In this document: positions 10,123 to 44,756 of the stretch, one piece after another
How the letters are laid out: every line of letters begins with the position of its first letter
Numbering within the stretch: position 1 is the first letter of the stretch
IMG/VR virus record: IMGVR_UViG_3300042511_000879
Location: 1-64,000 of that record
Strand: one strand, 5' to 3'
DNA length: 64,000 nucleotides
The notes under the pieces: model-generated
Told to the model about the DNA's origin: nothing
Seen by the model: the letters and a program-made list of their open reading frames with translations, nothing else
The model's database searches: none
Translations under genes and position numbers: made by a program

Positions 10123-10597
10123 TTTTAATAGTATCTTCAGTTAGGACAATAAATCGCCAATAACGACTAGCCGCATATTCTTTAGCAGCATTATATTTAT
10201 CCATATTTTTTATATATTGTTCCGTAAGAAATTTATAGGATGCAAGACTTTTTTTAGTTGGATTTGCCGGAGGTTTTGGCTTTTGTATTTGATTTTTTGG
10301 TTTGATTTCAGCAAGAAACTCTTCGCTGGAGCCATCTTGCTTTAGTATTTTAAAGTAAAAGTCTGGGTGATATGTTCTTTGTTTGTTTCCCTGACGCGAC
10401 CAATATTTAATCTCAACAGGTTCGCTTGACCAGCAAAGGACTTTGTCATTAATATCACACCAAATCATAAACTTATATTCCCAAGAGCTTCTGTAAATAA
10501 TAGGCAATGGACCTACATATTTTTCAGGGTTCTTGGGATTAAAATATCCTTGGTTAAATCCGGACTTTTTAGTTGGTTTTAAATTCTTAATTGACAT
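10109..10597 (-). CDS. Head completion nuclease (T4 gp4, TnsA-like)
   Basis: QGYFNPKNPEKY, YRSSWE, WSSE, YHPDF, EIKP, F.VLTE. Confidence 0.88.
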   Translation of the reverse strand: MSIKNLKPTKKSGFNQGYFNPKNPEKYVGPLPIIYRSSWEYKFMIWCDINDKVLCWSSEPVEIKYWSRQGNKQRTYHPDFYFKILKQDGSSEEFLAEIKPKNQIQKPKPPANPTKKSLASYKFLTEQYIKNMDKYNAAKEYAASRYWRFIVLTEDTIKNGLH

Positions 10598-22280: not shown

Positions 22281-23477
22281 TTAAAATAATGATGTTGAAT
22301 AAATTAAGTTTCTATTTAGTGTATGTAAACCAACTGCGGTTAGAACCCGGTTCAATGGATCTATAACACTCTTTTCGAATTGTGTTTCATAGTCAACGGT
22401 TGGCGCAATTTCATAAGGATGAGCTCCAGGTTGGTATGCAAATATTTCGCAAGTTCCATGTTTACAGTGGTATAGTTTTAACTTTTCACCATTACCAATC
22501 ATCTTGTATTTGTTCTTATACTTTGGATTTTGATTCATTAGGAAATTATAAAATCCTGCAGCTTTAACGTTTGGTGGACATTTTAAACCATATTGAAATT
22601 CTACCGTATCGTCTATGATATATTTTTCAATATTATTAGTTCTTTTATTAAAACATATCTCATCAACACTTGCTAATTGAAATTCTTTTTTACATTGTTT
22701 CAAATAATCTACAAGTCTTTTTAATAAGGACGCTGTAGGTTTTTCTGAAAGAATCAGTTTAAGAATCTCAGTCAACTGCTTTCTTGCAAGAGCTGGAGTT
22801 GAACTTTGAATTGTATCAAATCCGATGGTTTTAACTTTCTTAAGCGAAGGGTAACGTTCTTCGATTCCAATTTTATCTTCCCAAGCAATATTTTGCAAGT
22901 ATTTTTTCTTAGCTAACCAAATTCCAGAGTATGCAATCGTTTCTAATTCAAACTGAAGGAAGTTTTCTGTATTAGTTGCTTCCGCATATTTCTCCATACA
23001 CTTAAAGATATATTCTTTAAGTCTGAAGTTATACAATTTCATAATAAATTGGTCAATCGATACCTTGTCTCCGAGCCATTCAATAGATTCATACATCTCT
23101 TCAAATTGTACGTAACAAGAATCGGTATCAATATAAACAACAGAAGGTCTCACCAACTTGTTTTTAACTTGAATATTAAAAAACTCATGAACTACTTTAT
23201 CTTTAGTCCAAAACTCTTGAAAATACTTATTTAGTATCTTCTCAGAATATAGAATCGCAGACTGTCCCTGTAAGGTAATAGATTCTGCGATGTCTATATT
23301 AAAAAAGTGAAACCATTTGTTACCGAAGGCGCCATAGATCGAGTTAAGCATTACTTTTACTGCTTGTTCATAGGCTCCAAACTTTGCTGACAACATAGAA
23401 TAATGCTCAACCAATGTTTTAATTTCATCTTGTGATAAATCACTTTCTGGTTTTAGTATTAATTCTTCGATTGTCAT
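22281..23477 (-). CDS. Family B DNA polymerase, C-terminal subunit (split gp43, part B)
   Basis: Motif B KVMLNSIYG, ITLQGQ, motif C YIDTDS, KKKY, thumb region; lacks exonuclease domain and motif A. Confidence 0.9.
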   Translation of the reverse strand: MTIEELILKPESDLSQDEIKTLVEHYSMLSAKFGAYEQAVKVMLNSIYGAFGNKWFHFFNIDIAESITLQGQSAILYSEKILNKYFQEFWTKDKVVHEFFNIQVKNKLVRPSVVYIDTDSCYVQFEEMYESIEWLGDKVSIDQFIMKLYNFRLKEYIFKCMEKYAEATNTENFLQFELETIAYSGIWLAKKKYLQNIAWEDKIGIEERYPSLKKVKTIGFDTIQSSTPALARKQLTEILKLILSEKPTASLLKRLVDYLKQCKKEFQLASVDEICFNKRTNNIEKYIIDDTVEFQYGLKCPPNVKAAGFYNFLMNQNPKYKNKYKMIGNGEKLKLYHCKHGTCEIFAYQPGAHPYEIAPTVDYETQFEKSVIDPLNRVLTAVGLHTLNRNLIYSTSLF

Positions 23478-25394: not shown

Positions 25395-27020
25395 TTATGC
25401 CGAACAGCTATCGCATTCAAGAATATCTCTTGCAAATGATTGCGCTGAACTTTGGCTAAATTGGTAGTATAATGTTTTAACCCCTTCCTCGTGAGCATAA
25501 AGATACAATGTATTAATATCTTTAGCGGGTACTGAAGGATGAATCATCAAATTTAGTGACTGTGATTGGTCAATAAAATGTTGTCTTTGAGCCGCTTGCA
25601 GTACAATTTCTTTTGGACTGATTTCAACGAAAGATTTAAAAACTTCTTTGGTTGGAAAGTCTAAATGTTGTACACTTCCGTCTCTCTTTAAGATTCCTTC
25701 CCAAACTTCTGGTGTATTTAAACCATATTTGTCCAGCTCTTGAATTAAGAAAGGATTTTTGTAAATTGTTTTTGACTTGGCCAAATCTTTAATAAAATAA
25801 TTAGATTTGATTGGTTCAATTCCCATACTTACTTGTCCTAAAATAAATGAACTACTTTTGGTTGGAGCAATCGCAACTAGAGTAGTGTTAGCGTATCCTG
25901 GTCGGATTGATTTGTAACCTTTCTCATCATGCAATAATCTAGAAGCCGCTTCACTCTTTTCTTTTAGTGTTGAAAAGATTTCATGATTCAATTGTTTTGC
26001 TTGAAGTGAATCAAAACTGATTAATTTAGATTGAAACAATGAATGATAACCAAGGACTCCAAGTCCTAAGGCTCTGTGGTCATTTGCAAATCTCCATGCT
26101 CTTTTCATTCCAGGCATATTATAAGATTTATTTATGAACTCATTCATAACTGCGTTTAAGAACATTGTATAAACTTCGATAGCATCAGTTTCTTTAATTT
26201 CGTCCCAGTGTAATAGGTTAATAGAACCTAAACAACAAACAAATGAATTGAATGAATCTGTTGGTAATTGAATTTCACTACAAAGGTTACTTGCAGTAAT
26301 ATCAAGTCCTAATTCTTTGTATGGCGAATTATTGTTTGAGTTATCTTTAAACATAATATATGGAAAACCAAACTCATTACGTCTTTGAATTACCTTAGCC
26401 CAAATTTTACGTTTTTCAGCATCTCCTGATTTCATATCAGCGATCCAAGCATCAGTAACAGTAACTCCATATTGTAGGTTTTGAATTGGATTCCCTTCAG
26501 TTCCAATATCTAAGAATTCTAAAATGTCATTATGTTCAACTGGTAACCAAACCGCGCATGCTCCTCTTCGGGCTTCTGATTGTTTACAAACATCAACTGT
26601 TGTATCATATAATCTGGCATAGTGTACTGGACCATCGGCAGTTCCTCCTGTCGAAATCTTAGTACCTCTTGCCCGGATGTTTCCTAAAAATGCAGAAGTT
26701 CCTCCTCCGTATTTTGACATCATTCCAACTTCTCTACTTCCATTTAAGATACTATCTAAAGTATCATCTACATTACTTCCATAACAACTAACCGGAAGTC
26801 CTTTGTCTTTTCCATAATTAATCCAAACTGGAGTTGATAAACTATAGAATCCTCTAGTCATATAGTCCTCAAACTTTTTTGCAAATCCTTCAATTTTTAA
26901 GTCTTTTTCTGCGGTATTTGCTACATCTTTAATTCGCTGCTCTGGAGATTCAGTAATATAACCTCTAGATAAAAATGTTCTACTGTCTTCGTTAAGCCAG
27001 TAATTCTTCTCGTAATCCAT
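25395..27020 (-). CDS. nrdA: Ribonucleotide reductase class Ia alpha subunit (short, no ATP cone)
   Basis: PVSC, GGGTS, SNLCSEI, LGLGVLG, IAPTKSSS, DQSQSLN, KTLYY, C-terminal CDSC. Confidence 0.93.
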   Translation of the reverse strand: MDYEKNYWLNEDSRTFLSRGYITESPEQRIKDVANTAEKDLKIEGFAKKFEDYMTRGFYSLSTPVWINYGKDKGLPVSCYGSNVDDTLDSILNGSREVGMMSKYGGGTSAFLGNIRARGTKISTGGTADGPVHYARLYDTTVDVCKQSEARRGACAVWLPVEHNDILEFLDIGTEGNPIQNLQYGVTVTDAWIADMKSGDAEKRKIWAKVIQRRNEFGFPYIMFKDNSNNNSPYKELGLDITASNLCSEIQLPTDSFNSFVCCLGSINLLHWDEIKETDAIEVYTMFLNAVMNEFINKSYNMPGMKRAWRFANDHRALGLGVLGYHSLFQSKLISFDSLQAKQLNHEIFSTLKEKSEAASRLLHDEKGYKSIRPGYANTTLVAIAPTKSSSFILGQVSMGIEPIKSNYFIKDLAKSKTIYKNPFLIQELDKYGLNTPEVWEGILKRDGSVQHLDFPTKEVFKSFVEISPKEIVLQAAQRQHFIDQSQSLNLMIHPSVPAKDINTLYLYAHEEGVKTLYYQFSQSSAQSFARDILECDSCSA

Positions 27021-27042
27021 TTAGTTTAATTTGTTTTTAATT

Positions 27043-28020
27043 TTAAAATAAGTCGTCTTCGGTAATTGCCTTAGACTTTTTGTTGTAGTCAATTGATTTT
27101 TTGTAGAAGAAATCACCTTCTTTTGTTGAAAGAATCTCAACATCAAACCATAGAGATTTTTCAATTTCTGTAAAATCAACTTCAAATACTGGTTTCATTC
27201 CAATTCGTTGTAGGGAATTATTAAAACGATTTTGAATAAATTGTTTGATAGTTTCTTTTGGTAAGAAATCAAGTTCACCATTTTCAAAGATCCAATCAAG
27301 AATTTTAACCTCTGCTAGGTATGCTTTCTTACATGCAGAATCTATAAGTTGTTCAAATTCCTCATCAAACCATTCTGGATTTTCTCTTCTAATAATGTTA
27401 ATTAATTCAGATCCGAAGTTTCCGTGGATTTCCTCCTCTTTACTTGTCGCTTCAACTACATTTGAAATACCTTTAAATAGATTTTTTTCTTTGTTAAAGG
27501 ACATCATAATAAAGAATTGGCTAAATAGACTAACATGTTCTATAAACAATGAAAATAGCAATACGGATTTCGTATACATTTTATTGTCCTTACTTCTTGT
27601 ACCATCCAAATACTTTGTCAAGTATGCAATTCTATCTTTAATTGCTGGAATCTCTACTACATGTTGGAATTCATCTTCTAATCCTAGGATTCTTAATAAT
27701 TGTGCGTAAGCATCTTTGTGTCGCACTTCACTTTCGGCAAATGTCATACCAACATCTCCAATTTCAGTGATTGGCATTCTTTTGTAAAGATCTGCCCAAA
27801 AAGTTTTAACATTAACTTCAATTTGTGCAATTGCTAGCATCGATCTTTTAATTACTTCACGCTCTGGATCAGTGACTTTAGTCATAAAATCATCGATATC
27901 TGTTGTAAAATTAAATTCGGTGTGAATCCAATATGAGTGACGGATTGCGTCTTTGTATGCTAATAGTGAAGGGTATTCGTAAGGTAAAATATTTACGCGT
28001 TTTTGAAAGATATTGCTCAT
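27043..28020 (-). CDS. nrdB: Ribonucleotide reductase class Ia beta subunit
   Basis: W..TE, ESEVRH..AY, IEHVSLFSQF, EEEIH, DFF. Confidence 0.93.
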   Translation of the reverse strand: MSNIFQKRVNILPYEYPSLLAYKDAIRHSYWIHTEFNFTTDIDDFMTKVTDPEREVIKRSMLAIAQIEVNVKTFWADLYKRMPITEIGDVGMTFAESEVRHKDAYAQLLRILGLEDEFQHVVEIPAIKDRIAYLTKYLDGTRSKDNKMYTKSVLLFSLFIEHVSLFSQFFIMMSFNKEKNLFKGISNVVEATSKEEEIHGNFGSELINIIRRENPEWFDEEFEQLIDSACKKAYLAEVKILDWIFENGELDFLPKETIKQFIQNRFNNSLQRIGMKPVFEVDFTEIEKSLWFDVEILSTKEGDFFYKKSIDYNKKSKAITEDDLF

Positions 28021-28056: not shown

Positions 28057-29454
28057 TTATTGGAGCAGTTTTTTCAACCGGTCAGCTTTTGTGTAATATT
28101 CATAAGAAGTTTTTTTATAATCTTTACGTTGTGCATATAGGTCACTTAATATCTTTCTGAGAATAGAATCTTCGGTCTTATAAACTACGCCATTATCACA
28201 AACGATAACCTCTTTATTTTTTCTGCGCTCTTCAATTTCACTTTTATAAATCTTTTCAATATATGCATCGGGAGATATATTAAATTGTCTCATTATCGAA
28301 GGATATAGTGAAGCAAAATCGAATGCACTTACACCTTCATAGAATCCTAAGATTGGTTCTTTTACAAATGCTCCAGCATATTGGCCATCTTTTTGGCTAT
28401 CAGATTTCTCTTCACTTCCAATTCGCATTCCTTGCTCAGCAAGTTTTCTTGCCATAATTGCTTCAGTAACTGCCACTGGAGAACTTGCTTTGTATAACGG
28501 CATATTTGTAATATTTGCCAGTGTTAGTAGTACCTCCATCGACTTCAACTTCTGGTCAATGTAATATACAAGCACTGAATCGACAACATTGTAATATATG
28601 TACTTGACAAAGTTATCCCGGTATAAGTCCTGTAGTGATCCAGTGAACTTGATTTTGTTAACGTTCAAGACTTGACTTGAAACATAATCTAATGAATTGG
28701 ATTCTTTAACTTTTACAGTTCGGTCATATTTGTCATACAATTGCATATAGTCAAGAATTCCGATATGAAGAGGACGACCATCTGTATGATCGATTGAATG
28801 GGTCATACCAACTTCTTTAATATCGATTTGAAGTCTTTTACATCGATTAACGATATACTGCCAGTCATAGTTGATAAAATTCCACCCAGTCATCATAGGA
28901 AACTTTGGTAAGAATTTCATTAAGAATGTGTAAACCATATCGTACTCAGACTTGAACTTATGGTACTTAAATTCCCAGTCCTGGTCAAAATCTTTGAAGT
29001 ACTCATTAGTATCGTCTTGAATCTTTTGGATTTTATCTGAAGCCATATCTTCCAGTCCAAGCACGATTGCTTTACGGTCTGGAGTAATTATTGAGAATGA
29101 AAGAATTCTACTTTTGGCCTCTTCGGCTTTTGGAAAGCCATCAACAATTTCAGTTTCAATATCGACAAAATAAGTCTTTGGCATATTATATGCTGTTAGG
29201 TCTTTTTTGTCCTTCTCTGAAAGATTATCTAAAAAATAAAGAATTGAAAACTTATTAAATTGTTTTCCATATCCTAATTTAACAGGACGGCCATCCCAGT
29301 TTTTATAGTCTGGACTGGCCGCTCTGTCTTTTTCATCACAAACATACCAATTTTGGAATTTATCCACTGGGTATTGTTTAAATGCTACTTCTCCCTTGTC
29401 ATTATAGTATGAAATGATAACATCTTTTTCACGCTGCTCGATGTCAAGTATCAT
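28057..29454 (-). CDS. Family B DNA polymerase, N-terminal subunit (3'-5' exonuclease + motif A; split gp43, part A)
   Basis: VDIETE, GWNFINYD, YNVVD, YAGAFV, motif A FDFASLYPSI; ends within the fingers at QRKDYKK. Confidence 0.9.
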   Translation of the reverse strand: MILDIEQREKDVIISYYNDKGEVAFKQYPVDKFQNWYVCDEKDRAASPDYKNWDGRPVKLGYGKQFNKFSILYFLDNLSEKDKKDLTAYNMPKTYFVDIETEIVDGFPKAEEAKSRILSFSIITPDRKAIVLGLEDMASDKIQKIQDDTNEYFKDFDQDWEFKYHKFKSEYDMVYTFLMKFLPKFPMMTGWNFINYDWQYIVNRCKRLQIDIKEVGMTHSIDHTDGRPLHIGILDYMQLYDKYDRTVKVKESNSLDYVSSQVLNVNKIKFTGSLQDLYRDNFVKYIYYNVVDSVLVYYIDQKLKSMEVLLTLANITNMPLYKASSPVAVTEAIMARKLAEQGMRIGSEEKSDSQKDGQYAGAFVKEPILGFYEGVSAFDFASLYPSIMRQFNISPDAYIEKIYKSEIEERRKNKEVIVCDNGVVYKTEDSILRKILSDLYAQRKDYKKTSYEYYTKADRLKKLLQ

Positions 29455-29921
29455 TAATAGTTATTTTTCTGACGTTGAACGTTTGCTTCTGCTTTTGCGA
29501 AGTAGTAATTATAGGCTGTTTTGGCATCCAATCCAATCGATGCTGCATAGTTAAATACAAAGTGGATTATGTCGACCCATTCCATATACAATTCTTTTTT
29601 ATCATCTTCCGATAGGTCACTGATTTTCAGGGTTTCATACTTTGAAAAGTCTTTTTTCCAGTATTTCCAAACTGCATTTCCACTACCATCTTTAATACCA
29701 CCAAGAGCATCGGTCATTTCATGAATTTCATCAATAACAGCGTGTGTGTTAACATGCCAAAAGTTCATAATCTCTCTAAGTGTCATATCTTCGAAATTAA
29801 AACCATAGGTTTGCTCTTGCATTTTCTTTTGATTTTCCATGATGTCAGCTAAATGTGTAGTTGATTCATTGTAGAAGTCATTAACTTCCAGGTCTTTACA
29901 TTGATTGTCTATATTTGCCAT
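29454..29921 (-). CDS. Dimeric all-alpha dCTPase/dUTPase (T4 gp56-like)
   Basis: DEIHEM..ALGG, WKYWKK, EWVDIIHF, NVQRQKNNY. Confidence 0.8.
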   Translation of the reverse strand: MANIDNQCKDLEVNDFYNESTTHLADIMENQKKMQEQTYGFNFEDMTLREIMNFWHVNTHAVIDEIHEMTDALGGIKDGSGNAVWKYWKKDFSKYETLKISDLSEDDKKELYMEWVDIIHFVFNYAASIGLDAKTAYNYYFAKAEANVQRQKNNY

Positions 29922-29963
29922 AAGTTTTTTATATAATAGTTTTATAGGTAATTTTGAACTTGT

Positions 29964-31154
29964 TTAAAATAAACATGAACTTTTAAATGATGGAGCTTCA
30001 ATCTCACAAGATTCACCAATTTGTTCTTTTGAAATTGGAGCATTTGCACGGTTTAAGGCCATCTTTTTACTATCTCTCAATCGTAAAAATACACCAAACT
30101 GACAACAACTAATTTCAGTACCAAATGTAGTAAACCTTCCAGTCTCTGTGATTGTTTGTAAGTAGTCAAAATTCTCTCCTGTAAAATCAAAGAATTCATG
30201 TTGAGTGTCCCGGATTTGTCTGATGACTTTAGCTCCAACGTCAGATGAAATTGAAAAACCTAAGTCTTCATAGAACCAGTTGATTGTAATCATCGCACCA
30301 ACTCCGGGTGCAACAAAATCATCATCTTCGTTAAGATTTCCAGATAAACTATTTGGTCGCAATAGATCAGGAGTACCGATTTCAGGCATTCTGGCAAGGT
30401 TGGTACTAAAATGGTAACCATAATAGTTTCCAATTCCTCGATGAGAAGTTAAAAATTCAAAAGACTCTTCCATCGTCGGTTTCTTAGCATAGAATTCTGC
30501 AAAACGTGGACCTAGTAGAGTAAACCAAAAAAACATATCGCTTGTTCGACTCTGTCTGATTGGATCTGGTTCGGCATTTATTAATACATCATAAGGAGTT
30601 TTAAGTACTCGGGCATAGTTTCTTGATTCAGTCTGAAGACTTGTTCGTAATTCAGTAGTGCCATAAATCTTTTCTCCACGTCTTTTTGCATTTTCCATGT
30701 TAACCATACACTGTAGAACATACTTCTCATCATTAACTAATCGGTCATATTTGACAAATGGAAATCCAGTGTCGTGCGTTAATAGACTAATTGTATTTGA
30801 CGGTCCATAGAATTTTACAATCGCTGCATTAATAAGACGGTCTTCAAATGTACAGTCTGGATTGTAGAACACATTTTCATTTAACCAAATAATCTCATCG
30901 TGAAAAGAACGATTTGGATGGAAGTATGGAACTGAACGTCCATCTACTATAAATCCATGTCCAAACGTGTTTTCTTTTCCAGTTCCTTCACGGTGCCGAA
31001 AGGTATCAAAAGTACATGTTTTTGCAAAACGAACCTCATATTCTCTTCGATTCATTTCATGAACAAAATCTCGAATAAGTTGTCTTTTTTCTACAGGAAT
31101 TAAATCCAATAGGGCTTGAGAATCCATCTCAAGCAGTTTTTTGTTTGAAGTCAT
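29964..31154 (-). CDS. Putative amino acid:DNA transferase / aGPT-pyrophosphorylase-like DNA hypermodification enzyme
   Basis: HhH-like LTSHRGIGNYYGYH, FVAPGVGA and TEISCCQF match the aGPT-Pplase pattern (GIG.F..Y, FVV.GPGA, EH.LCEF). Confidence 0.65.
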   Translation of the reverse strand: MTSNKKLLEMDSQALLDLIPVEKRQLIRDFVHEMNRREYEVRFAKTCTFDTFRHREGTGKENTFGHGFIVDGRSVPYFHPNRSFHDEIIWLNENVFYNPDCTFEDRLINAAIVKFYGPSNTISLLTHDTGFPFVKYDRLVNDEKYVLQCMVNMENAKRRGEKIYGTTELRTSLQTESRNYARVLKTPYDVLINAEPDPIRQSRTSDMFFWFTLLGPRFAEFYAKKPTMEESFEFLTSHRGIGNYYGYHFSTNLARMPEIGTPDLLRPNSLSGNLNEDDDFVAPGVGAMITINWFYEDLGFSISSDVGAKVIRQIRDTQHEFFDFTGENFDYLQTITETGRFTTFGTEISCCQFGVFLRLRDSKKMALNRANAPISKEQIGESCEIEAPSFKSSCLF

Positions 31155-31161
31155 TTTAAGT

Positions 31162-31863
31162 TTATTTTTTAAAGAAGCAATCGTGCGCTATTAAATTATC
31201 GGTAAATATAATCAATGGAACTATTCTAGAATGTGAATAAATTGACTGTAGCCTTTCCATTACTTGGTACATTTCAGCTCTGTGTTTTCCAGCGTGTAAT
31301 TCAATAAATAAATATTTAGGTTGATAATCTATTAAGGTATCGATTAGCGTATATTCAGCAGATTCAATATCCATTTTAATTATATCCGGATTGTATTTCT
31401 TTAGTAATTTTTTTAGATGGATATTTTCAACTGAATCATATTCATTAAACTTTACCTTGTTCTCAATTGAAGTTGAGCAATGCGCATTTTGACTTGACGA
31501 TTTGAATATCTTTAGTGTTTTATCAGGAAGTCCAGAAACTGCAGCATATATTAAATCCACATAATCATCATTTTTAAATGTTGATTGTAATTTTTCAAAG
31601 TTTCGGGCATCACATTCTACAGTACAAACTTTGCTTGCTCCGGAATCTATTGCAATTTGAGTAAAAGCACCAATATTGGCTCCAAGGTCTAAACAAACTG
31701 TTCCATTATAATCAATTTCAGGAACTAAGTAATTAGAAATGCTTTCACCAATCATAGTATCGTCAACACCTTCTGATGCACCTAGTATTTTAACATACTT
31801 CTTTTTAAGTCGAGTCCTTTCTAATTTTGAAATTGGAAACTCTGGAAGTTTAACCCTACTCAT
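31162..31863 (-). CDS. FkbM-family SAM-dependent methyltransferase
   Basis: CLDLGANIGAF, VECD..N, IKMDIESAE, IELH. Confidence 0.85.
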   Translation of the reverse strand: MSRVKLPEFPISKLERTRLKKKYVKILGASEGVDDTMIGESISNYLVPEIDYNGTVCLDLGANIGAFTQIAIDSGASKVCTVECDARNFEKLQSTFKNDDYVDLIYAAVSGLPDKTLKIFKSSSQNAHCSTSIENKVKFNEYDSVENIHLKKLLKKYNPDIIKMDIESAEYTLIDTLIDYQPKYLFIELHAGKHRAEMYQVMERLQSIYSHSRIVPLIIFTDNLIAHDCFFKK

Positions 31864-31864
31864 C

Positions 31865-32263
31865 TTATTTTTGTACTAATTTTGATACAATATTAACCAA
31901 TTCTACATCAGGACAATTTTCCTGAAGGATTTGATATTGTATTGGGTCATCTTCAAAAAAACGTGAAACAATAACACCTTCACCCTTTAAACGGTTAATA
32001 GTATGGGCTTTGTGATGCCCAGAATGTCTTCTTGCCGCAACTGTATGATTTCCACGTTCCTCTAGAGTCATTGGATTAAAATACACTTTGCATTTAATTC
32101 CTCTCTCTTTAAGGATTGCGAGAACCTCGTCCTGTTCATCGACACATCTTCCGGTAATAACAAAATCTGTGGTTGCTCTTGGAGTTATTCCAATTGAGAT
32201 TACTCCATCAAAATCGTATCCGTAGATATCGACTGATTTTTTAGTTTTAAATATATTTAACAT
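31865..32263 (-). CDS. Capless HAD-family phosphatase
   Basis: Motif I YDFDGV, motif II ITGR, motif III K (HHK), motif IV FEDD. Confidence 0.8.
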   Translation of the reverse strand: MLNIFKTKKSVDIYGYDFDGVISIGITPRATTDFVITGRCVDEQDEVLAILKERGIKCKVYFNPMTLEERGNHTVAARRHSGHHKAHTINRLKGEGVIVSRFFEDDPIQYQILQENCPDVELVNIVSKLVQK

Positions 32264-32278
32264 GCTAAAAGTTTTGAT

Positions 32279-32308
32279 AAAAAAAGGGAGAGTTATTCTC
32301 TCCCTTTT
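32279..32308 (-). terminator. Intrinsic terminator after ino1
   Basis: AAAAGGGAGAG/CTCTCCCTTTT stem. Confidence 0.72.
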
Positions 32309-32323
32309 GGATTAATTGGATTG

Positions 32324-33514
32324 TTAGTTTTTTGTTTTAGCAACTAACTGGTTTCTTGTAGAATCTGTTAGGCGTCTTGCAGCCAATTCAGTACACTCAT
32401 AAACAGCGTCAGAGAACATCATCTGGTCTGGTGGAGTTTTTTGTGTAAACGCTGAAGGACCTCTTAAGGCTCCTACAACTCCTAATTCTCTTGCAACTCT
32501 TAAGTAACGAACTGCGTCGATTACAACTCCTGCAGAGTTTGGAGAGTCTTGTACACTTAATTGAGCATCAAAAAGAACTGGTGCTCCACCGAATCCTGTA
32601 AGTTCTAAACGGAAGTTAGCAACTTTATTATCACCATAGAATGCGATATATTCAGAAGGACCTGCATGTAAGAATGAATCTTCAGTTGAGATTCCTCTAA
32701 TTTCGTTTTGAGCACGAATAACGTTTTCTTTAGAAATCTTTTTAGATGCTAGACGAGATTTGTCTTCCATGTTTAAGAAATCTGTGTTACCTCCAACGTT
32801 TCTTTGGATGTGCGCTTTTACATGATGTCCTCTTTCAAAGGCAAGTTCTTGTAACATTTGAGAAAGAATACTTGCTCCAAATTGAGAACGCATATCATCT
32901 CCGATAATTGGAATACCTGCATCGATAAATCTTTGCTCCCAAGCTGGGTCAGATGCGATAAAAACTGGAATACAGTTTACTAAAGAGATTCCTGTTTCAA
33001 GACAAATTTCAGCCCAGAATTCAGTTGTTTTTTGTGAACCTACTGGTAAGTAGTTAATAAGTACTTCAACACCGTGGTCTTTTAATTTAGCAATAATTGA
33101 ATCTTTCCACTCACGTGATTTTTTTGGAGTCCAATCAGTACGGTTCATGTCTGTAGAATTTCTTAGTTTTTCGTCAACTAAGAAACGATTTTGCTCTGGA
33201 TAGTTGTCCATAAGAGCTGCGTAACCATCAATAACAGGTGATTCATAAACTGGTGCTGTAGAAGTAATAACATCAACGATGTCATACGCACAGTTTGGTC
33301 TTTGTTTAAGGGCATATCCTAATGTTTGATTAACTTTACGTTCATCAATTTCAAAGGCACATTCAAATTCAATATTTTCTGCCTTGTAACCTCCAATATC
33401 GGACTTCATCATTCCGGTAATATCATTTGGATTTTCTGTGTAATATTGTACACCTTCAACTAATGATTTAGCGCAATTTCCGGCTCCAATAATTCCTACT
33501 TTAATTTTCTTCAT
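32324..33514 (-). CDS. ino1: myo-inositol-1(3)-phosphate synthase
   Basis: GIIGAGNCAKSLVEG, NYLPVGS, NCIPVFIAS, GDDMRSQ, NVGGNTDFLNM, SKKISK, GPSEYI, DSPNSAG. Confidence 0.92.
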   Translation of the reverse strand: MKKIKVGIIGAGNCAKSLVEGVQYYTENPNDITGMMKSDIGGYKAENIEFECAFEIDERKVNQTLGYALKQRPNCAYDIVDVITSTAPVYESPVIDGYAALMDNYPEQNRFLVDEKLRNSTDMNRTDWTPKKSREWKDSIIAKLKDHGVEVLINYLPVGSQKTTEFWAEICLETGISLVNCIPVFIASDPAWEQRFIDAGIPIIGDDMRSQFGASILSQMLQELAFERGHHVKAHIQRNVGGNTDFLNMEDKSRLASKKISKENVIRAQNEIRGISTEDSFLHAGPSEYIAFYGDNKVANFRLELTGFGGAPVLFDAQLSVQDSPNSAGVVIDAVRYLRVARELGVVGALRGPSAFTQKTPPDQMMFSDAVYECTELAARRLTDSTRNQLVAKTKN

Positions 33515-33540
33515 TGTTCTTAAAATTTAATTTATAATTT

Positions 33541-33568
33541 TTATACTTGTTTTATTTAAAAAGTTTCA
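33541..33568 (-). promoter_or_regulatory. TGAAAC-N17-TATAA promoter (representative copy, upstream of ino1)
   Basis: Identical spacing at 2071, 24262, 37433, 37721, 54921; near matches at 20641 and 10990. Confidence 0.7.
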
Positions 33569-34615
33569 AAAAAGAGTATTGATAGTCTTCTTTAGGACAA
33601 CATTTTTTTCGGACGTCTCGAAATCATATTGGTAAAACTCTCTAGATAGGTGAACAGAACCTGGCTTTTCCATGTAAGTATCGGCAAAATATTGAGGTTC
33701 TGCTGAATACCAGTGAATTGGCCATTCGATTACGTTCATATTATATATAGCCGAGAGTTTGTCAACCTCTTCGTTAAATATCTCCATCAATTGAGTCCGT
33801 TCTCGTTGAGTTCCGATAAATGGAGTATTTTTGTAGTACCCAGTTTTTGGGATTCTACGACCTTCGAATTCGATTGGCAATAATTTTACAATGGTATTCT
33901 TTTGGATTCCTAAAGATTTAAGGTGTTCAAAGTAATTTGTTACTAGACTTTTAACTGCATCAATAGGTTTTTCTTGTCGACATAGGTGATGTCGAACATC
34001 AATGTTTCCAAAGTATGTAATTAGGTGCTCGGTTCCTTCAGGAATATATGAGGCCATTCCTTCTTTCAAGACTCCAAATAGTGTTTTACCATCATTTCGA
34101 CTAATATTTGCACCAGGATGGTACACTGAAACTGAATGAGAATCTCCCAATACAAATGTTTTTGAATCTAATTTTAATTCAATTGTTTGGGTTTCTAAAC
34201 TTCTTTTGGTAAGCTCTGCTGTATTAAGAGATGCCCATAAAGGAGAACATGATTTCATTCGACTTTCGGCAAATTGGCCAACATTTGGCATTTCTCGATT
34301 CAAACAATATATAGTTCCACTAAAATCTAAGAATCTTTTAATTCTCTCTGCTGGTTCATCAGTAGCTCCACCAAATAGATTATAAGAACCTTGGAATTCC
34401 ATTGGAAGCGCTACTAGCCAGATATCATATTGGTGAATATCTTCTGACTTTGTAAGTACTTCAACTTCTAATCCTAGAGACCTCAATTGATTAGCTAATA
34501 AGAAGGCCCATGCACTTTTATGAGAGGCCTTCTTTGAGCTATAAGTTGTTACAACATCATCAATTGCAATCTTCTTTCCCTTTAATGATTCTAAAACTTC
34601 GTAAATATTAACCAT
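33566..34615 (-). CDS. Two-domain protein: beta-glucosyltransferase-like N-terminus plus SGNH-like C-terminus
   Basis: KIAI...LGLEVEVL..DIHQYDIWLV..NLFGG resembles the T4 BGT N-domain; LGDSHS, GNID, SVHLS are SGNH blocks. Confidence 0.5.
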   Translation of the reverse strand: MVNIYEVLESLKGKKIAIDDVVTTYSSKKASHKSAWAFLLANQLRSLGLEVEVLTKSEDIHQYDIWLVALPMEFQGSYNLFGGATDEPAERIKRFLDFSGTIYCLNREMPNVGQFAESRMKSCSPLWASLNTAELTKRSLETQTIELKLDSKTFVLGDSHSVSVYHPGANISRNDGKTLFGVLKEGMASYIPEGTEHLITYFGNIDVRHHLCRQEKPIDAVKSLVTNYFEHLKSLGIQKNTIVKLLPIEFEGRRIPKTGYYKNTPFIGTQRERTQLMEIFNEEVDKLSAIYNMNVIEWPIHWYSAEPQYFADTYMEKPGSVHLSREFYQYDFETSEKNVVLKKTINTLF

Positions 34616-34901
34616 TGAAAGCGTCATCTATATCGTTTCTATTTTCTTCAATGTAATTGTCTAATCCTTGGATATATGCAACTGCATCTAATAAATTATC
34701 ACGCTTGTGATTGTATGATTCTCTCGAGAATTTAAGTGCAACTAGCGCTTTAAACATGTGTTCACCAGTAACTTCAAGTCCGGTCATACCTTTAAAAATC
34801 ATTGCAGCTCGATCCATACCTTCTGAGAAAGGACCATAATTTCTGTCTGCTTCTTCTGAGCGGTTGTTTACAATTCCGCTTGCTTCATCTAAAATATTCA
34901 T
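34608..34901 (-). CDS. DUF6378-like small helical protein (nucleotide-modification associated)
   Basis: ILDEA..IVN.R...YG..., LVALKFSRE..HKRDNLLDAVAY. Confidence 0.7.
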   Translation of the reverse strand: MNILDEASGIVNNRSEEADRNYGPFSEGMDRAAMIFKGMTGLEVTGEHMFKALVALKFSRESYNHKRDNLLDAVAYIQGLDNYIEENRNDIDDAFNG

Positions 34902-35983: not shown

Positions 35984-37408
35984 TTATACAATTGGAGCGT
36001 ATCTCTCACTCAAAATTGTTTTATCCATTATTTGTTGTGGAGATTCGATATCTCCACCAAGTAAACTTGTCATAATTGCTGGAGAGAATCCAGAAACTAA
36101 TGCAGTTCCTTTAGCATCAAATGCAACTGGTACTCCTCCGTTTCGGGATTGAATATTCCAGTAAACAATTTGAGGTACCCTGTAACCTGCATCGGCATAA
36201 AGGGTTTCAATCATCTTCTGAGCAGTTGGATTCCAGTGGCTTTCTCTACCGTAACCTTTTCCTGTTGCCGAATTAAATTCCATATCCGATAGGATTAAGA
36301 TTTTGTTTGGCATTTTGTCTTGAGACAATTTGTGCTTAGTGGCCTGATCTAGGATCAGTTTGAATGTAGCCTCAAGATCTGTTGACATTCCCCAATCAGA
36401 GTCTGACATCTGTGTGTAGCGATCATTCAGTGAGCCACTTAATACTTGTAACTGTGGTTTACTTGAGAATGTGATAAATGCATCTTTGAAAAGACCTTCA
36501 TTTCTTTCAGAAATATAAAGACCTAAAGAGATTGCAACATTCATACAAGTTACAGTTTTACTTCCACCAGCTGGAGTTGACATAGAACCTGAAACATCTA
36601 CTACTGGTAAAATCATATCGTTTGCACCTTCCAAATAGTTTGGTAAGGCTTTCCATTGTTCGTTTGCTACGGTTGCATTTCCACGTTCTAATGATGTAAT
36701 AACGTCATAAGGATAAACTGCACCTGCATTAATTTTAGCCTCACCTTTTACAAGAGAAGCAATGTACGCTGAATAACTTTCGTATGCATTTTTACCAAAG
36801 GCTTTTTGGTATCTAGCCGAAGCAACTGAAGGTAATTTACCAAAATCAATAGAATTCCAGTCTTTAGCACACATTTTAGTTTCAACTACATTAGTTAAAC
36901 CTACAAGAGATTTTCTGTATTGTTTTGGGGACATTCCAGTAAATTTACGTAACTTTTCAGCTATTGGACCTTTACGTGGCATCCATTTAGCACATAAACC
37001 GTTTTCGTTGATTAATGCATCAGAGATTAGGGTGAATGCATCTTTTTCAAGATATGTTCCTGATAGGGCTAATAAGTCATCCCAACGACCATACTCTGAG
37101 ATTAAGTGTAAGTTTGGTTTAAGTACTAAGTCGTGGTTTTCTGCTAAATAAACTAAAATGTCCTTGAAAACTTGACGTTCTCCAGCTCCACCTCGAACAT
37201 CTCTGGCCCAGAAAAGTAGTTTCATAGCACGCTTCGGATCTTCATTAAATGCTTTAGAGAAAGTTGCAATCAAACGTTGCTTGTCTTGTCCTCTCATAGC
37301 TCCAATGTTAAAGAAAAGGTCAACGCAAGCATTCAATGAACTCGAGTTTGTCGCCATTCCATTTTCAGTTACTATATCTTCTTGTCTTAATGCGTCTAAG
37401 AATTCCAT
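35984..37408 (-). CDS. Ro60/TROVE-like protein with C-terminal vWA domain (DUF2828 family)
   Basis: TENG, RDVRGGAGER, YGRWDDL, AKWMPR, MIDAS VVDVSGSM, ILSDMEFN, IVYWN, VSGFS. Confidence 0.85.
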   Translation of the reverse strand: MEFLDALRQEDIVTENGMATNSSSLNACVDLFFNIGAMRGQDKQRLIATFSKAFNEDPKRAMKLLFWARDVRGGAGERQVFKDILVYLAENHDLVLKPNLHLISEYGRWDDLLALSGTYLEKDAFTLISDALINENGLCAKWMPRKGPIAEKLRKFTGMSPKQYRKSLVGLTNVVETKMCAKDWNSIDFGKLPSVASARYQKAFGKNAYESYSAYIASLVKGEAKINAGAVYPYDVITSLERGNATVANEQWKALPNYLEGANDMILPVVDVSGSMSTPAGGSKTVTCMNVAISLGLYISERNEGLFKDAFITFSSKPQLQVLSGSLNDRYTQMSDSDWGMSTDLEATFKLILDQATKHKLSQDKMPNKILILSDMEFNSATGKGYGRESHWNPTAQKMIETLYADAGYRVPQIVYWNIQSRNGGVPVAFDAKGTALVSGFSPAIMTSLLGGDIESPQQIMDKTILSERYAPIV

Positions 37409-42884: not shown

Positions 42885-44756
42885 TTATATATCTTTGTTA
42901 ATAAATTGTTCGAATGTCATGATTTCATTAGTAACTGATTCTGTAACAACTCCCATTGCATCTTCAATTTTAGATTTAAGTTCATTATACATCGAATGAA
43001 CTGCCTTTGGTGTTAGATTGTTAAATTGTTTTTCATTACCATCTAATAGAGCATTTCTAACTGCAGTAGCCGAAATATCATCGTCAGTTCTTGGAATTTC
43101 AAAAAGTCCAAAATCAGCTCTACAATTTAATTGGTCTCTATAAGAATCATTATTAACTTGATAACCATAGCTTGTCATTCTATCACTTCCCGTTCCCCAA
43201 AGTACTGGCTCATATTTAGGTCTCATTTCATTAAACATGATATCGATACCTCCAGTTGGAACTACAAATATTTCTTTTAAGAATGGATATTGTTTTTTAA
43301 CATGATTGAACATATCGATTTGGGTCTTTTCATCGTATGGTCTGCTAAATTCATCACCTTTCTTTTTGGTTTTTGATTTAACTAGGAATACAACTACTGG
43401 AAATCCATTCTCTTTATGTATAGTTTCTAAAACTTTTGCATGGCCTAATGTAAACGGCTGGAATCTTCCAACAAACATATTTACTGGTTGTTTTCCTTGT
43501 TCAACATGAGTAAGTTTAAGTGCCTCGTTTAAATTAACTGAAGATTTGATTTTATCACGCAACATAAAATTTTGGTAGTCATAGATTGCATTTTCATCAG
43601 TGTTTTCAACAAATATTTTATCGTTGATTTTTTCAATAATTTCGTTTAAACGTTCCATAGTATCTTGGTCTATTAAATCTGAAGTTTTAGTTCTTTTCTT
43701 TCTAAAAGAACCTAAAATCATTTTAAAAAGTTCTGCTAGAATATCGTTAGAAACATATTTTAAGGTTTTTTCATCGGTAATATACTTTGAGTTTAATTTA
43801 AAAGATTCTGCTGATGAAAATTCAGCGCTTTCAAAATTAACTCCAATATATTTTGAAGAGTTCTTGTCAACATATTCATTAAATATAATTGACATTATTT
43901 CAAGATATCGATAATCTGCTCGGTCATCTTCAAGCTGTACTTCATCGATCTTAAATTGAGTTATAAATTCTAAAAAGTCGGTGACTGCAATTTGATACAT
44001 GTGACTTGAAGAGTTATCAATTGGATTTTTTCTTGTAAAATCTTCTAATTTAAAAGATTTTATAGATTTTTCATCGATAAAATTAACAACCAATCCATCG
44101 AATTCCTCATCAATATCAGAATTTAGGGCAGTTTCAAAAGCACTAGGATTAAAAAGTTTAACTATTTTACTGGTAAAACTTAATTTGTCCTTTGTTTCTG
44201 GTAAATAGTCGAATGATTCACTAAATTCTCTATCACTCATTCCAAGCAATTCTAGTAACTCATCTCTTTGTAATTGAGATAAATAGCCATCAAATAATAT
44301 GCTTGGCTGTTGAACATCAAGAATTTTTGCCCATTTATTTAAGATTACCGGGTCATTAATAGTTTTCTTAACTTTATTACCTTCTCCAAGTTGTTGGATA
44401 TGCGTTAAGATTAAATTATTTTTTGGAGTTTTTATGTATTTAATTTTAGATACATTAACTTCTGGTAGGTATTCAAAACCAAATCTCCAATCAATTGGCA
44501 TTTGATTTTTAGTAGCACTTGGTAAACTTTGCATGTAGTTGATTGCAATCTCATATAGAGATATAATTGTTCTATCAACTAAATTTAGTTTGTCTGAATT
44601 TGAAGATTTAAAATATTCAAATCCATCAAGATTTCTTTTAACAAGAAATGTAGGCGCAGAAACTTTCTCAGTTACTAACACCCTATTTTTTAACATCTCA
44701 ATAAAGGTTTCTCTATTGGTTTCGTTAAAATACTCTCTTAATTTTTGTAATGCCAT
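42885..44756 (-). CDS. Cytidyltransferase-like (HIGH nucleotidyltransferase) protein with degenerate ligase-like N-terminal domain
   Basis: FVGRFQPFTLGH, GSDR, ISATAVR; N-terminal VTEKVSA...FDGLVV. Confidence 0.75.
   Translation of the reverse strand: MALQKLREYFNETNRETFIEMLKNRVLVTEKVSAPTFLVKRNLDGFEYFKSSNSDKLNLVDRTIISLYEIAINYMQSLPSATKNQMPIDWRFGFEYLPEVNVSKIKYIKTPKNNLILTHIQQLGEGNKVKKTINDPVILNKWAKILDVQQPSILFDGYLSQLQRDELLELLGMSDREFSESFDYLPETKDKLSFTSKIVKLFNPSAFETALNSDIDEEFDGLVVNFIDEKSIKSFKLEDFTRKNPIDNSSSHMYQIAVTDFLEFITQFKIDEVQLEDDRADYRYLEIMSIIFNEYVDKNSSKYIGVNFESAEFSSAESFKLNSKYITDEKTLKYVSNDILAELFKMILGSFRKKRTKTSDLIDQDTMERLNEIIEKINDKIFVENTDENAIYDYQNFMLRDKIKSSVNLNEALKLTHVEQGKQPVNMFVGRFQPFTLGHAKVLETIHKENGFPVVVFLVKSKTKKKGDEFSRPYDEKTQIDMFNHVKKQYPFLKEIFVVPTGGIDIMFNEMRPKYEPVLWGTGSDRMTSYGYQVNNDSYRDQLNCRADFGLFEIPRTDDDISATAVRNALLDGNEKQFNNLTPKAVHSMYNELKSKIEDAMGVVTESVTNEIMTFEQFINKDI

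Follow-up and report, generated by a model that had tools for sequence, protein, structure and literature searches.

The hypermodification of thymidine in phage DNA, as described for phages M6, ViI, PaMx11 and PhiW-14, relies on a ThyA-family hydroxymethylase that supplies 5-hydroxymethyluracil, on removal of the canonical dNTP, on a 5-hmdU DNA kinase that adds one phosphate to the base in DNA, and on an amino-acid:DNA transferase (AADT, aGPT-Pplase2, PF18724) that displaces this phosphate by a nucleophile such as an amino acid or polyamine (PMC8989533). In the T4 pathway, cytosine is replaced by 5-hydroxymethylcytosine (5hmC) through the dCMP hydroxymethylase gp42 and the dCTPase gp56, and the base is then decorated by alpha- and beta-glucosyltransferases, while RB69 and DLP3 contain arabinosylated 5-hydroxycytosine (PMC13326640). 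Other phages modify guanine to 7-deazaguanine derivatives with FolE, QueC, QueD, QueE and DpdA. We found no published inositol-modified base. Here, we analyzed a gene cluster of a lake-water T4-like phage in which enzymes predicted to make free inositol are encoded next to proteins of a DNA-base-modifying kind, and the genomic distribution of this inositol cassette points to an undescribed inositol-decorated DNA base.

The analyzed stretch of DNA, termed the window, comprises the 64,000 nucleotides from position 1 to 64,000 of the IMG/VR record IMGVR_UViG_3300042511_000879. The window belongs to a 234-kb IMG/VR contig (3300042318_001127), which it matches exactly over window positions 19967-41154. 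A preliminary description of the sequence had pointed to seven contiguous, co-oriented genes at 29454-34901, and this observation was confirmed, as all seven open reading frames exist on the minus strand, are tightly packed with overlaps or gaps of 60 nt or less, and end at the start of the N-terminal part of a split family-B DNA polymerase at 28057-29454. Six of the seven identities proposed there hold. The features, with the names P1 to P7 used below, are:

34608-34901, minus strand: P1, DUF6378 small protein (97 aa), an accessory part of unknown function
33566-34627, minus strand: P2, two-domain protein (353 aa) with an N-terminal Rossmann-like alpha/beta domain (about 1-150) and a C-terminal SGNH esterase/acyltransferase domain (about 153-330), a core part
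32324-33514, minus strand: P3, myo-inositol-3-phosphate synthase (Ino1, 396 aa), a core part
32288-32304, minus strand: terminator-like hairpin with a T-run in the 60-nt gap between the Ino1 and HAD genes, a possible attenuator or processing site
31865-32263, minus strand: P4, minimal capless HAD-type phosphatase (132 aa), predicted to dephosphorylate inositol phosphate, a core part that travels with Ino1 as a cassette
31162-31863, minus strand: P5, FkbM-family SAM methyltransferase (233 aa), an accessory part
29964-31154, minus strand: P6, helix-hairpin-helix (HhH) protein with DNA-glycosylase fold of family PF18723 (HMUDK_hel, 396 aa), predicted to bind and act on the modified base in DNA, a core part
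29454-29921, minus strand: P7, T4 gp56-type dCTPase/dUTPase (155 aa), predicted to deplete dCTP

P1 matched PF19905 (1.4e-8), was present in 31 of 44 loci holding P6 homologues, and was usually located directly upstream of P2. In atlas clusters it is sometimes fused to DUF4406, a nucleoside deoxyribosyltransferase-like domain. P2 had been described as a BGT-like/SGNH protein. The SGNH assignment of its C-terminal half is supported by the AlphaFold2 model (pLDDT 90), which matched SGNH folds in Foldseek (1e-4) and in VIA-align searches (Z 10-12.8 to many SGNH esterases and to the O-acetyltransferases PatB and OatA), and by the invariant residues G161-D162-S163-H164, N208, D210, and H326. The Asp that usually precedes the His by three residues is absent, and E320 is invariant instead. 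In contrast, the BGT-like assignment was not confirmed, as no GT-B structure appeared among the top Foldseek hits in the PDB and AFDB or among the VIA-align hits of the P2 model, and its N-terminal domain remained unassigned. In Aeromonas phage 44RR2.8t, P2 and P6 are fused in the 795-aa ORF233c.

The Ino1 identity of P3 is based on PF01658 (1.5e-22), for which only the C-terminal Pfam domain was matched, on phrog_33138 (3e-146), and on the similarity to M. tuberculosis Ino1 (1GR0, 9e-77, 262 bits), which is far stronger than that to the second PDB hit, a five-membered cyclitol-phosphate synthase (4e-40). The N-terminal G11-x-G13 motif is invariant in eight phage homologues; conversion of glucose-6-phosphate was not assayed. 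P4 gave no significant Pfam HAD hit at E up to 10 and only a weak PHROG match to the polynucleotide kinase phosphatase (1.6e-4), but all four HAD motifs, namely DxDGV with D17 and D19, TGR with T37, K85, and E104-D105-D106, are conserved in at least 80% of 109 distinct homologues, and the same family lies beside Ino1 in Cr30, Moby, and RP13. The hairpin between the two genes was found in a consensus scan, but as the number of such sites in the region is not above chance, this evidence is weak. P5 matched PF05050 (8.8e-13) and was found in 32 of 44 P6 loci. It is present or absent among close relatives, being missing in the loci L014, L018, and L020, whose P6 is 95-96% identical, and a contig of an RNA library joins position 31157 to 31865 and thereby skips exactly this gene. 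P7 matched phrog_173 (1e-11), and tblastn gave hits in 1427 phage records, including genes annotated as gp56 dCTPase in JSE, T2, T4, and many Straboviridae (30-37% identity, 1e-12 to 1e-16).

P6 had been proposed to be an aGPT-Pplase/AADT-like protein, and failure of this similarity had been named beforehand as a finding that would speak against the whole pathway. The similarity holds at the level of fold: with the P6 model (pLDDT 90), the wide VIA-align search ranked the PaMx11 AADT gp46, a 5-PmdU glycinyltransferase, first (8z2m_A, Z 9.3, 232 residues), followed by QNG1/DUF2419 queuine-salvage enzymes and a run of HhH-GPD glycosylases, although this Z-score is modest for a helical protein. 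At the level of sequence, P6 is not a member of the AADT family. It scored above the cutoff for PF18723 (33.0 bits against 25, 5.4e-8, residues 90-358), a related family that is fused to 5-hmdU DNA kinases, and a Pfam scan at E up to 10 returned only this family, whereas Cr30 gp123 scored 1.3e-52 on PF18724. In agreement with this, hhalign of the P6 alignment against 27 AADT sequences gave a probability of only 0.9%. Structural hits in AFDB and BFVD were PF18723 proteins, and those in BFVD included the SP10 5-hmdU DNA kinase, Pplase1, and AADT. The P6 alignment has 73 invariant columns across sequences of 43-90% identity, including a G240-I241-G242 hairpin and E347/C351/Q352. AADT enzymes have a catalytic cysteine with a neighboring glutamate (PMC8989533), and whether E347 and C351 correspond to these residues was left undecided, as no alignment to AADT could be obtained that would show equivalent positions. 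Longer P6 homologues carry a winged-helix-like C-terminal domain. P6 was absent from 185,579 bacterial and archaeal genomes.

As the preliminary description had correctly stated, no hydroxymethylase or kinase is encoded in the window, and the presence of such genes elsewhere in the genome had been named as a further criterion. The same contig indeed encodes a ThyA homologue (positions 5992-6846 of L124, a locus from the contig that contains the window) whose best solved relatives are T4 dCMP hydroxymethylase (6e-15) and MilA (2e-14), ahead of thymidylate synthases at 4e-10 or weaker. It carries the DFVCT and MRSND...FD motifs and the signature L143D, retained D169, and N177D, in agreement with the diagnostic residues of dCMP hydroxymethylases (L143D/E and N177D with D169 retained; PMC13326640). 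In contrast, no 5-hm base kinase was found, and no P-loop kinase lies in the cluster, in the 64-kb window, or in the flanks of related clusters of this type.

The third point that had been set out in advance was whether Ino1 co-occurs with the AADT-like protein in relatives. In 44 loci that hold a P6 homologue (25-100% identity) with enough flank, Ino1 is present in 43, P2 in 43, and HAD in 40. The one exception, the Aeromonas 44RR2.8t type, has the P2-P6 fusion directly next to a sodium:solute symporter in place of Ino1, which fits import of the small molecule instead of synthesis. Starting from Ino1 with Cr30 as reference, 47 of 48 well-flanked viral loci fall in three classes of DNA-modification cluster, which are the 5hmC-linked P2-P6 pair (class A), bona fide AADT with kinase and hmU genes (class B), and 7-deazaguanine clusters, and the HAD family of P4 occurs in all three. 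The single exception is a giant-virus contig. The sampled loci are not independent, and only 80 of at least 438 Ino1 loci were examined; bona fide AADT was present in 32 of these 80. Class B represents a complete thymidine hypermodification cluster: locus L173 holds HMUDK_hel (9e-43), a P-loop kinase, AADT, FkbM, Ino1, HAD, a dUMP-type ThyA homologue, and MazG, and locus L232 holds AADT, Ino1, HAD, Ploopntkinase3, and Tet_JBP. In Cr30, Ino1 lies next to gp122, a weak TAGT-like match, which is followed by the bona fide AADT gp123. In the Ino1 tree, the three classes are intermixed, and well-supported branches force at least 11, 6, and 5 label changes, showing that the cassette moved among the classes many times and that the association arose repeatedly. 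The ThyA homologues inside class A clusters are dCMP hydroxymethylases, as exemplified by that of locus L007, which matches T4 gp42 at 5.6e-83, and all carry L143D, keep D169, and carry N177D.

All three computational criteria thus came out in favor, and the interpretation that a phage-made inositol is attached to a hydroxymethylated pyrimidine in DNA is supported, albeit with corrections: the base is predicted to be 5hmC and not 5hmU, P6 is not a sequence member of the AADT family, no 5-hm base kinase was found, the BGT-like assignment is unsupported, and the leaving group displaced by AADT is phosphate and not pyrophosphate, as had been assumed (PMC8989533). With moderate confidence, we therefore regard the cluster as a biosynthetic module for a cyclitol hypermodification of phage DNA. 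In this view, the dCMP hydroxymethylase and P7 would replace cytosine by 5hmC before replication, as in T4, Ino1 would cyclize host glucose-6-phosphate to inositol-3-phosphate, and P4 would release free myo-inositol. After replication, P6 would bind DNA, present the 5hmC base, and, working with P2, replace or derivatize the hydroxyl of the 5-hydroxymethyl group with inositol, giving a 5-(inosityl-O-methyl)cytosine ether in parallel to the O-serinyl transfer by AADT on thymidine. P5 would then O-methylate the cyclitol in those phages that carry it. Our computations establish the gene identities, the fusion of P2 and P6, the co-occurrence statistics, and the hydroxymethylase signature, whereas it is inferred from gene context that inositol is the transferred group, that DNA rather than nucleotides is the acceptor, which hydroxyl is linked, how 5hmC is activated, and which roles P2 and P6 have. 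As no 5-hm base kinase lies in the cluster or the window, the leaving-group chemistry is unknown, and one possibility is that the SGNH domain O-acylates the hydroxymethyl group so that a carboxylate takes the place of phosphate, although an SGNH domain has no precedent in DNA modification. No chemistry was measured, there is no mass-spectrometric evidence of any kind, and the complex prediction for P2 and P6 gave no answer. PF18723 domains may be DNA-binding accessories of kinases rather than transferases. P6 has the fold of DNA-base-flipping enzymes and is nearest to AADT.

It is in principle possible, but in our view unlikely, that P6 and P2 modify 5hmC DNA with something other than inositol, and that the Ino1-HAD cassette supplies inositol for a lipid, a virion or host envelope glycoconjugate, an osmolyte, or a redirection of host glucose-6-phosphate, and merely rides in the early-gene region where accessory nucleotide-metabolism genes collect. 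No enzyme of the cluster has a demonstrated inositol-binding site, T4-like genomes do pack accessory genes around the replication genes, and P2 with DUF6378 also occurs next to a hydroxymethylase without Ino1 or P6 within 10 kb (loci L009, L154, and L157). Moreover, the hydroxymethylase gene of this genome lies about 150 kb from the cluster, beside a GT2 glycosyltransferase that could be the real 5hmC modifier. However, Ino1 and HAD abut three unrelated DNA-modification systems in phages with different replication modules (split PolB, Pol III alpha, and PolA), and the Ino1 tree needs many switches between these systems. In class B, Ino1 is usually the gene immediately after AADT, no CDP-alcohol transferase or other inositol-using enzyme was seen in any flank, and the Aeromonas phages swap Ino1 for the solute importer.

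Somewhat less likely still, the pathway could act on free nucleotides before replication, with P6 and P2 converting 5hmdCMP or 5hmdCTP into an inositol derivative that the polymerase then incorporates. The second and third best folds for P6 are the QNG1/DUF2419 enzymes, which act on a nucleotide, the cluster sits between a dCTPase and the polymerase, and the occasional DUF6378-DUF4406 fusion would also fit. On the other hand, all characterized relatives in the PF18723/aGPT-Pplase/AADT group act on polymeric DNA (PMC8989533), P6 keeps the GIG helix-hairpin-helix hairpin, long homologues carry the winged-helix-like domain, and a bulky cyclitol dNTP would have to be accepted by the polymerase. 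Least likely is that the Ino1 homologue makes a different cyclitol or sugar phosphate, so that another carbocycle is appended or the phosphate ester itself is transferred to give a phosphodiester-linked base, because, although the MIPS superfamily includes enzymes with other products, such as that of the second PDB hit, and only the C-terminal Pfam domain was matched, the match to authentic M. tuberculosis Ino1 is by far the stronger one and the co-inherited HAD phosphatase argues that the free polyol is the substrate.

In comparison to the thymidine hypermodification systems, the proposed pathway likewise is a post-replicative group transfer onto a 5-hydroxymethylpyrimidine supplied by a ThyA-family hydroxymethylase, with removal of the canonical dNTP and an HhH glycosylase-like fold shared with PaMx11 gp46, and the ViI AADT already uses a hydroxyl nucleophile (serine O). 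It differs in the predicted base, in the lack of a P-loop kinase, which class B loci do have, in the family of the HhH protein and its SGNH-domain partner, and in the donor, which would be a phage-made cyclitol instead of an amino acid or polyamine. The PF18723 domain of Bacillus phage SP10 gp186 belongs to a 5-hmdU DNA kinase, and the P6 model matches AlphaFold and BFVD models of such proteins, but P6 stands alone, adjacent to FkbM and the dCTPase, or is fused to the SGNH protein in Aeromonas phages, rather than being fused or adjacent to a P-loop kinase. It is also longer (396 aa against a 281-position profile), and its very high conservation suggests catalysis rather than binding alone.

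With T4, the phage shares gp23, gp20, gp32, gp41, gp44, UvsX, and UvsW, a gp56 homologue in the cluster, a dCMP-hydroxymethylase-type gene in the genome, and the position of the modifying genes next to the polymerase. However, no GT-B glucosyltransferase was found, and the appended group would be ether-linked inositol made from glucose-6-phosphate and not glucose from UDP-glucose. The RB69 and DLP3 systems also combine a ThyA homologue, a dCTPase, a small HAD-like phosphatase, and sugar-forming enzymes in a Straboviridae-type cluster to decorate cytosine through an ether bond, but their ThyA homologues carry D169N and make 5-hydroxy-dCMP, whereas all homologues linked to the present cluster keep D169, and those systems use NDP-arabinose and GT-B transferases (PMC13326640). 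The 7-deazaguanine clusters of Stenotrophomonas Menderavirus and of metagenomic phages contain the same Ino1-HAD cassette, but this class, for which no inositol derivative is described, concerns a different base and a different transferase and is not present in the window.

The seven genes of the region 29454-34901 were first examined one by one. They are minus-strand ORFs that overlap or are separated by 60 nt or less, and the last one ends where the N-terminal part of a split family-B DNA polymerase begins (28057-29454). In order of transcription, they are as follows.

34608-34901, minus strand: DUF6378 protein
33566-34627, minus strand: P2, a protein with a predicted Rossmann-like N-terminal domain and a predicted SGNH C-terminal domain
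32324-33514, minus strand: Ino1
31865-32263, minus strand: 132-aa protein with HAD phosphatase motifs
31162-31863, minus strand: FkbM methyltransferase
29964-31154, minus strand: P6, a protein assigned to PF18723 (HMUDK_hel)
29454-29921, minus strand: 155-aa gp56 dCTPase homologue

Pfam and PHROG scans confirmed DUF6378, Ino1 and FkbM, and the 155-aa protein matched genes annotated as gp56 dCTPase in T4, T2, JSE and more than 1400 phage records. The 132-aa protein had no Pfam hit, but an alignment of 109 homologues keeps all four HAD motifs (D17, D19, T37, K85, E104-D105-D106). DUF6378 showed no similarity to Cr30 gp125, the dATP/dGTP diphosphohydrolase. The observation made in the preliminary description is therefore confirmed, with two corrections that concern P2 and P6.

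P2, which had been described as a BGT-like/SGNH protein, was modelled with a pLDDT of 90 as an N-terminal Rossmann-like domain and a C-terminal SGNH domain. The SGNH part matches esterases and the O-acetyltransferases PatB and OatA (Foldseek 1e-4; VIA-align Z up to 12.8) and keeps the GDSH serine, N208 and H326. As only SGNH hits were found and no GT-B or BGT similarity appeared, the assignment as BGT-like was rejected. For the N-terminal domain, the leads from Atlas clusters (WcbI and FkbH_N, with scores of 0.5-0.58) were too weak to use.

P6 had been described as an aGPT-Pplase/AADT-like protein, and its likeness to AADT had been singled out beforehand as a point on which the proposal could fail. 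Pfam assigns P6 to PF18723, the helical domain of 5-hmdU DNA kinases (5.4e-8, above the cutoff), and not to the AADT family PF18724. A Foldseek search of the PDB with the P6 model (pLDDT 90) gave no hit below E 0.9, whereas VIA-align ranked the PaMx11 5-PmdU glycinyltransferase (8z2m) first at Z 9.3, followed by QNG1 and a run of HhH-GPD DNA glycosylases. Viral and AlphaFold models of PF18723 proteins, SP10 gp186, Pplase1 and AADT also matched. At the sequence level, a profile search of PDB sequences with the P6 alignment found nothing at E up to 10, Cr30 AADT found no PDB sequence, and hhalign of P6 against 27 AADT sequences and against the HMUDK_hel protein of the viral locus L173 gave probabilities below 1%. 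The link to AADT therefore rests on fold only, and P6 is AADT-like in fold but is not a member of that family.

P6 is extremely conserved, with 73 invariant columns that include a GIG hairpin and E347/C351. The P6 model was not superposed on 8z2m to see whether C351 and E347 occupy the AADT catalytic site. In Aeromonas phages 44RR2.8t, 31 and relatives, P2 and P6 are fused in one 795-aa protein. A complex prediction for P2 and P6 gave no answer and is thus no evidence either way. Homologues of P6 with 481-608 aa from jumbo-phage contigs (P0014-P0048) carry, after about residue 380, a Lys/Glu-rich linker and a conserved C-terminal domain of about 65 aa. This domain is winged-helix-like, but as its nearest Atlas clusters (DpnI_C, BlaI, ArsR) scored below 0.9, this is only a lead. 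In several relatives (L005 5794-6237, L009 9268-9687, L154, L157), a short HhH-GPD protein (139-147 aa; PF00730, 1e-9) that is absent from the window precedes DUF6378 and P2.

The window is T4-like, with gp23, gp20, the prohead protease, gp32, gp41, gp44, gp46/47, UvsX, UvsW and RNR. Window positions 19967-41154 are identical to a locus of the 234,467-bp IMG/VR contig 3300042318_001127. The window is present in lake-water metagenomes, but the raw Nanopore signal of lake-water runs was not inspected for systematic deviation at C in this phage. No P6 relative was found in 185,579 bacterial and archaeal genomes, so that there is no host clue. Scans for sigma-70 promoters and terminators as well as the T4 late-promoter motif were not above chance in the region. 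Among contigs of RNA libraries, only relatives at 90-95% identity cover the cluster, and as DNA carry-over cannot be excluded, expression is not shown by these data. The family-B DNA polymerase is split into an exonuclease/N-terminal gene and a C-terminal polymerase gene about 4.6 kb apart (28057-29454 and 22281-23477, with 25395-28020 between), and the RNR small and large subunit genes and other ORFs lie between them. The same layout occurs in the relatives L005 and L008, and 44RR2.8t also has a split gene (43 / 43B), but there the two parts are adjacent.

Other genes of the window were noted as well. About 1.1 kb upstream of the cluster, with two small unassigned ORFs in between, lies a gene for a DUF2828/DUF7788 protein (35984-37408; 474 aa; phrog_850, annotated 'RNA-binding protein', 6e-153), which resembles TROVE/vWA Ro-like proteins. 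A BspA-type leucine-rich-repeat protein (12067-14241; 724 aa), a gp15-like protein with collagen repeats (14246-16063; 605 aa) and a TnsA-like endonuclease N-terminal domain protein (10109-10597; 162 aa) are encoded in or beside the block between the structural genes and the gp46/47 recombination genes. A 623-aa protein with a C-terminal cytidylyltransferase-like domain (42885-44756; PF01467, 2.8e-7) was considered as a possible CDP-inositol route. However, it lies 8 kb away, and nothing beyond conserved synteny in close relatives (the same relative position in L005, L006 and L008) links it to the cluster, so a link to the inositol pathway is not supported.

We then examined which genes accompany P6 and Ino1 in other viruses, as a lack of co-occurrence of Ino1 with AADT in relatives had been specified in advance as an argument against the proposal. 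Among 44 viral loci with a P6 homologue (25-100% identity) and sufficient flanks, Ino1 is present in 43, P2 in 43, the HAD gene in 40 and FkbM in 32. The single exception is the Aeromonas fusion, which lies directly beside a sodium:solute symporter (PF00474, 6e-53) instead of Ino1. We also started from Ino1 itself, which has at least 438 viral loci in IMG/VR, and took the 80 loci nearest to Cr30 Ino1. Of these, 34 are class A (with P6/P2), 32 are class B (with bona fide AADT) and 9 are class C (inside FolE/QueC/QueE/DpdA clusters). Of the 48 loci with at least 2.5 kb on both sides, 47 fall in one of these classes, and the exception encodes an Rpb1-type RNA polymerase and is a giant virus.

Class B loci are complete thymidine hypermodification clusters. 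L173 has PolA, HMUDK_hel (9e-43), a P-loop kinase, AADT, FkbM, Ino1, HAD, a dUMP-type ThyA homologue and MazG, and L232 has AADT, Ino1, HAD, Ploopntkinase3 and a Tet/JBP dioxygenase. In cultured phages, Cr30 has Ino1 followed by gp122, a weak TAGT-like match, and then by the AADT gp123 (1.3e-52), and RP13 has an AADT homologue 4 kb from Ino1. In Stenotrophomonas phage Moby (L003 6207-11621), Ino1 and HAD lie between FolE and QueC/DpdA/QueE. The cassette also sits inside such 7-deazaguanine DNA-modification clusters in L168, L170, L184, L197, L205, L235 and L239, often with QueC directly after the HAD gene. This hints at an inositol derivative of a 7-deazaguanine base, although no mechanism is evident.

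A maximum-likelihood tree of 63 Ino1 sequences mixes the three classes, and well-supported branches force at least 11, 6 and 5 label changes. The association with DNA-modification genes has therefore been made many times and is not inherited synteny. Ino1 genes on giant-virus contigs (L216, 7995-9134, and L227; Rpb1 RNA polymerase, GVMAG label) nest within phage Ino1 clades in this tree, but lack the HAD gene and the DNA-modification neighbors.

To address which base is involved, the ThyA homologues were compared. Those inside class A clusters are cytosine hydroxymethylases: the homologue of L007 matches T4 gp42 at 5.6e-83, against 1e-10 for thymidylate synthases, and that of L041 is nearest to MilA and T4 CH. 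The diagnostic positions are N177D for dCMP, L143D/E for a hydroxymethyl product and D169N for 5-hydroxy-dCMP synthases (PMC13326640). Every class A homologue has D-x-x-C, RSND and a final D, whereas class B homologues keep N177 and are dUMP enzymes. A search seeded with these proteins recovered a 284-aa homologue on the window's own contig (L124:5992-6846), which has the same signature and whose best PDB hits are T4 CH (6e-15) and MilA (2e-14). A missing hydroxymethylase and kinase in the rest of the genome would, as stated beforehand, have counted against the proposal. The hydroxymethylase is present, so that the proposal held for this enzyme, but no base kinase was found, and the full 234-kb contig was not annotated for kinases, C5-methyltransferases and glycosyltransferases. 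44RR2.8t has gene 42 with the same signature and gene 56, and no alpha- or beta-gt was annotated in the 31-kb stretch examined, which covers the gene 42-43-alpha-gt neighborhood.

In the genome of the window, the hydroxymethylase gene is flanked by genes for a ClpB-like double-AAA+ ATPase (657 aa), a ClpP protease (228 aa), a DUF6445 protein and a 616-aa GT2 glycosyltransferase (L124 3055-5028, 7145-7831 and 9151-11001). In L140-L149 and L162, and also in L007, L041 and many class A loci, one or two C5-cytosine DNA methyltransferase-like genes (about 400 aa, PF00145) lie next to the dCMP hydroxymethylase or to P2. As these phages are predicted to replace C by 5hmC, the role of these genes is unexplained.

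Taken together, the computational analyses show the genes for a 5hmC-type precursor pathway, a two-step route to free myo-inositol, a DNA-glycosylase-fold protein that is physically coupled in some phages to an SGNH enzyme, and an optional methyltransferase. From these we infer that inositol is joined to the 5-hydroxymethyl carbon of cytosine in DNA as an ether, which would parallel the O-serinyl transfer by ViI AADT (PMC8989533). The earlier interpretation, that phage-made inositol is attached to a hydroxymethyl-pyrimidine in DNA, is thus supported, with the attachment itself being an inference. As no kinase was found in the cluster or the window, we tentatively propose that the SGNH domain esterifies the hydroxymethyl group to create the leaving group, or else decorates the cyclitol. 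FkbM is accessory and is cleanly absent in relatives whose P6 is 95-96% identical, and a contig of an RNA library joins 31157 to 31865.

It is in principle possible that inositol serves another acceptor and that the adjacency is incidental. The three unrelated systems and the many switches in the Ino1 tree argue against this view, but the GT2 gene beside the hydroxymethylase and the P2/DUF6378 loci without Ino1 keep it alive. Alternatively, the chemistry could take place on nucleotides, as suggested by the QNG1-like fold of P6. Least likely, the product is another cyclitol or a phosphodiester.

A more far-reaching reading, which we regard as unlikely although it is not ruled out, is that a portable two-gene cassette of Ino1 and a minimal HAD phosphatase has been recruited repeatedly by three unrelated phage DNA-modification systems, namely the 5hmC system with the new SGNH and HhH enzyme pair, the 5hmU system with kinase and AADT, and the 7-deazaguanine system with DpdA and QueC. 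If so, inositol-conjugated derivatives of C, T and G all exist in nature. In the 5hmC version, activation of the hydroxymethyl group would then run through an SGNH-catalysed O-acyl intermediate rather than a phosphate, which would be a new enzymology for DNA bases.

Phage DNA hypermodifications decide whether restriction enzymes and CRISPR nucleases can cut a genome, and they have supplied tools for epigenetic sequencing. All described pyrimidine hypermodifications carry sugars, amino acids or polyamines, and a carbocyclic polyol attached to a base would be a new chemical class. It would also be the first case in which a phage makes the appended group from central metabolism with its own two-enzyme cassette, and it would add a new enzyme pair, an SGNH domain and a PF18723 HhH domain, that acts on 5hmC in DNA and could be useful for selective 5hmC labelling. 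The cassette is common, and the finding is directly testable, as cultured phages carry each version: Aeromonas phages 44RR2.8t and 31 have the fusion plus an importer, Caulobacter Cr30 and Ralstonia RP13 have the AADT version, and Stenotrophomonas Moby and IME-SM1 have the 7-deazaguanine version. Literature searches found no paper that describes inositol on a nucleobase or the function of phage Ino1. In this view, the system works like known hydroxymethylpyrimidine hypermodification, from which it differs in the donor, a phage-made cyclitol, in the base, 5hmC, and in the enzymes, which are SGNH plus PF18723 with no kinase and no GT-B.
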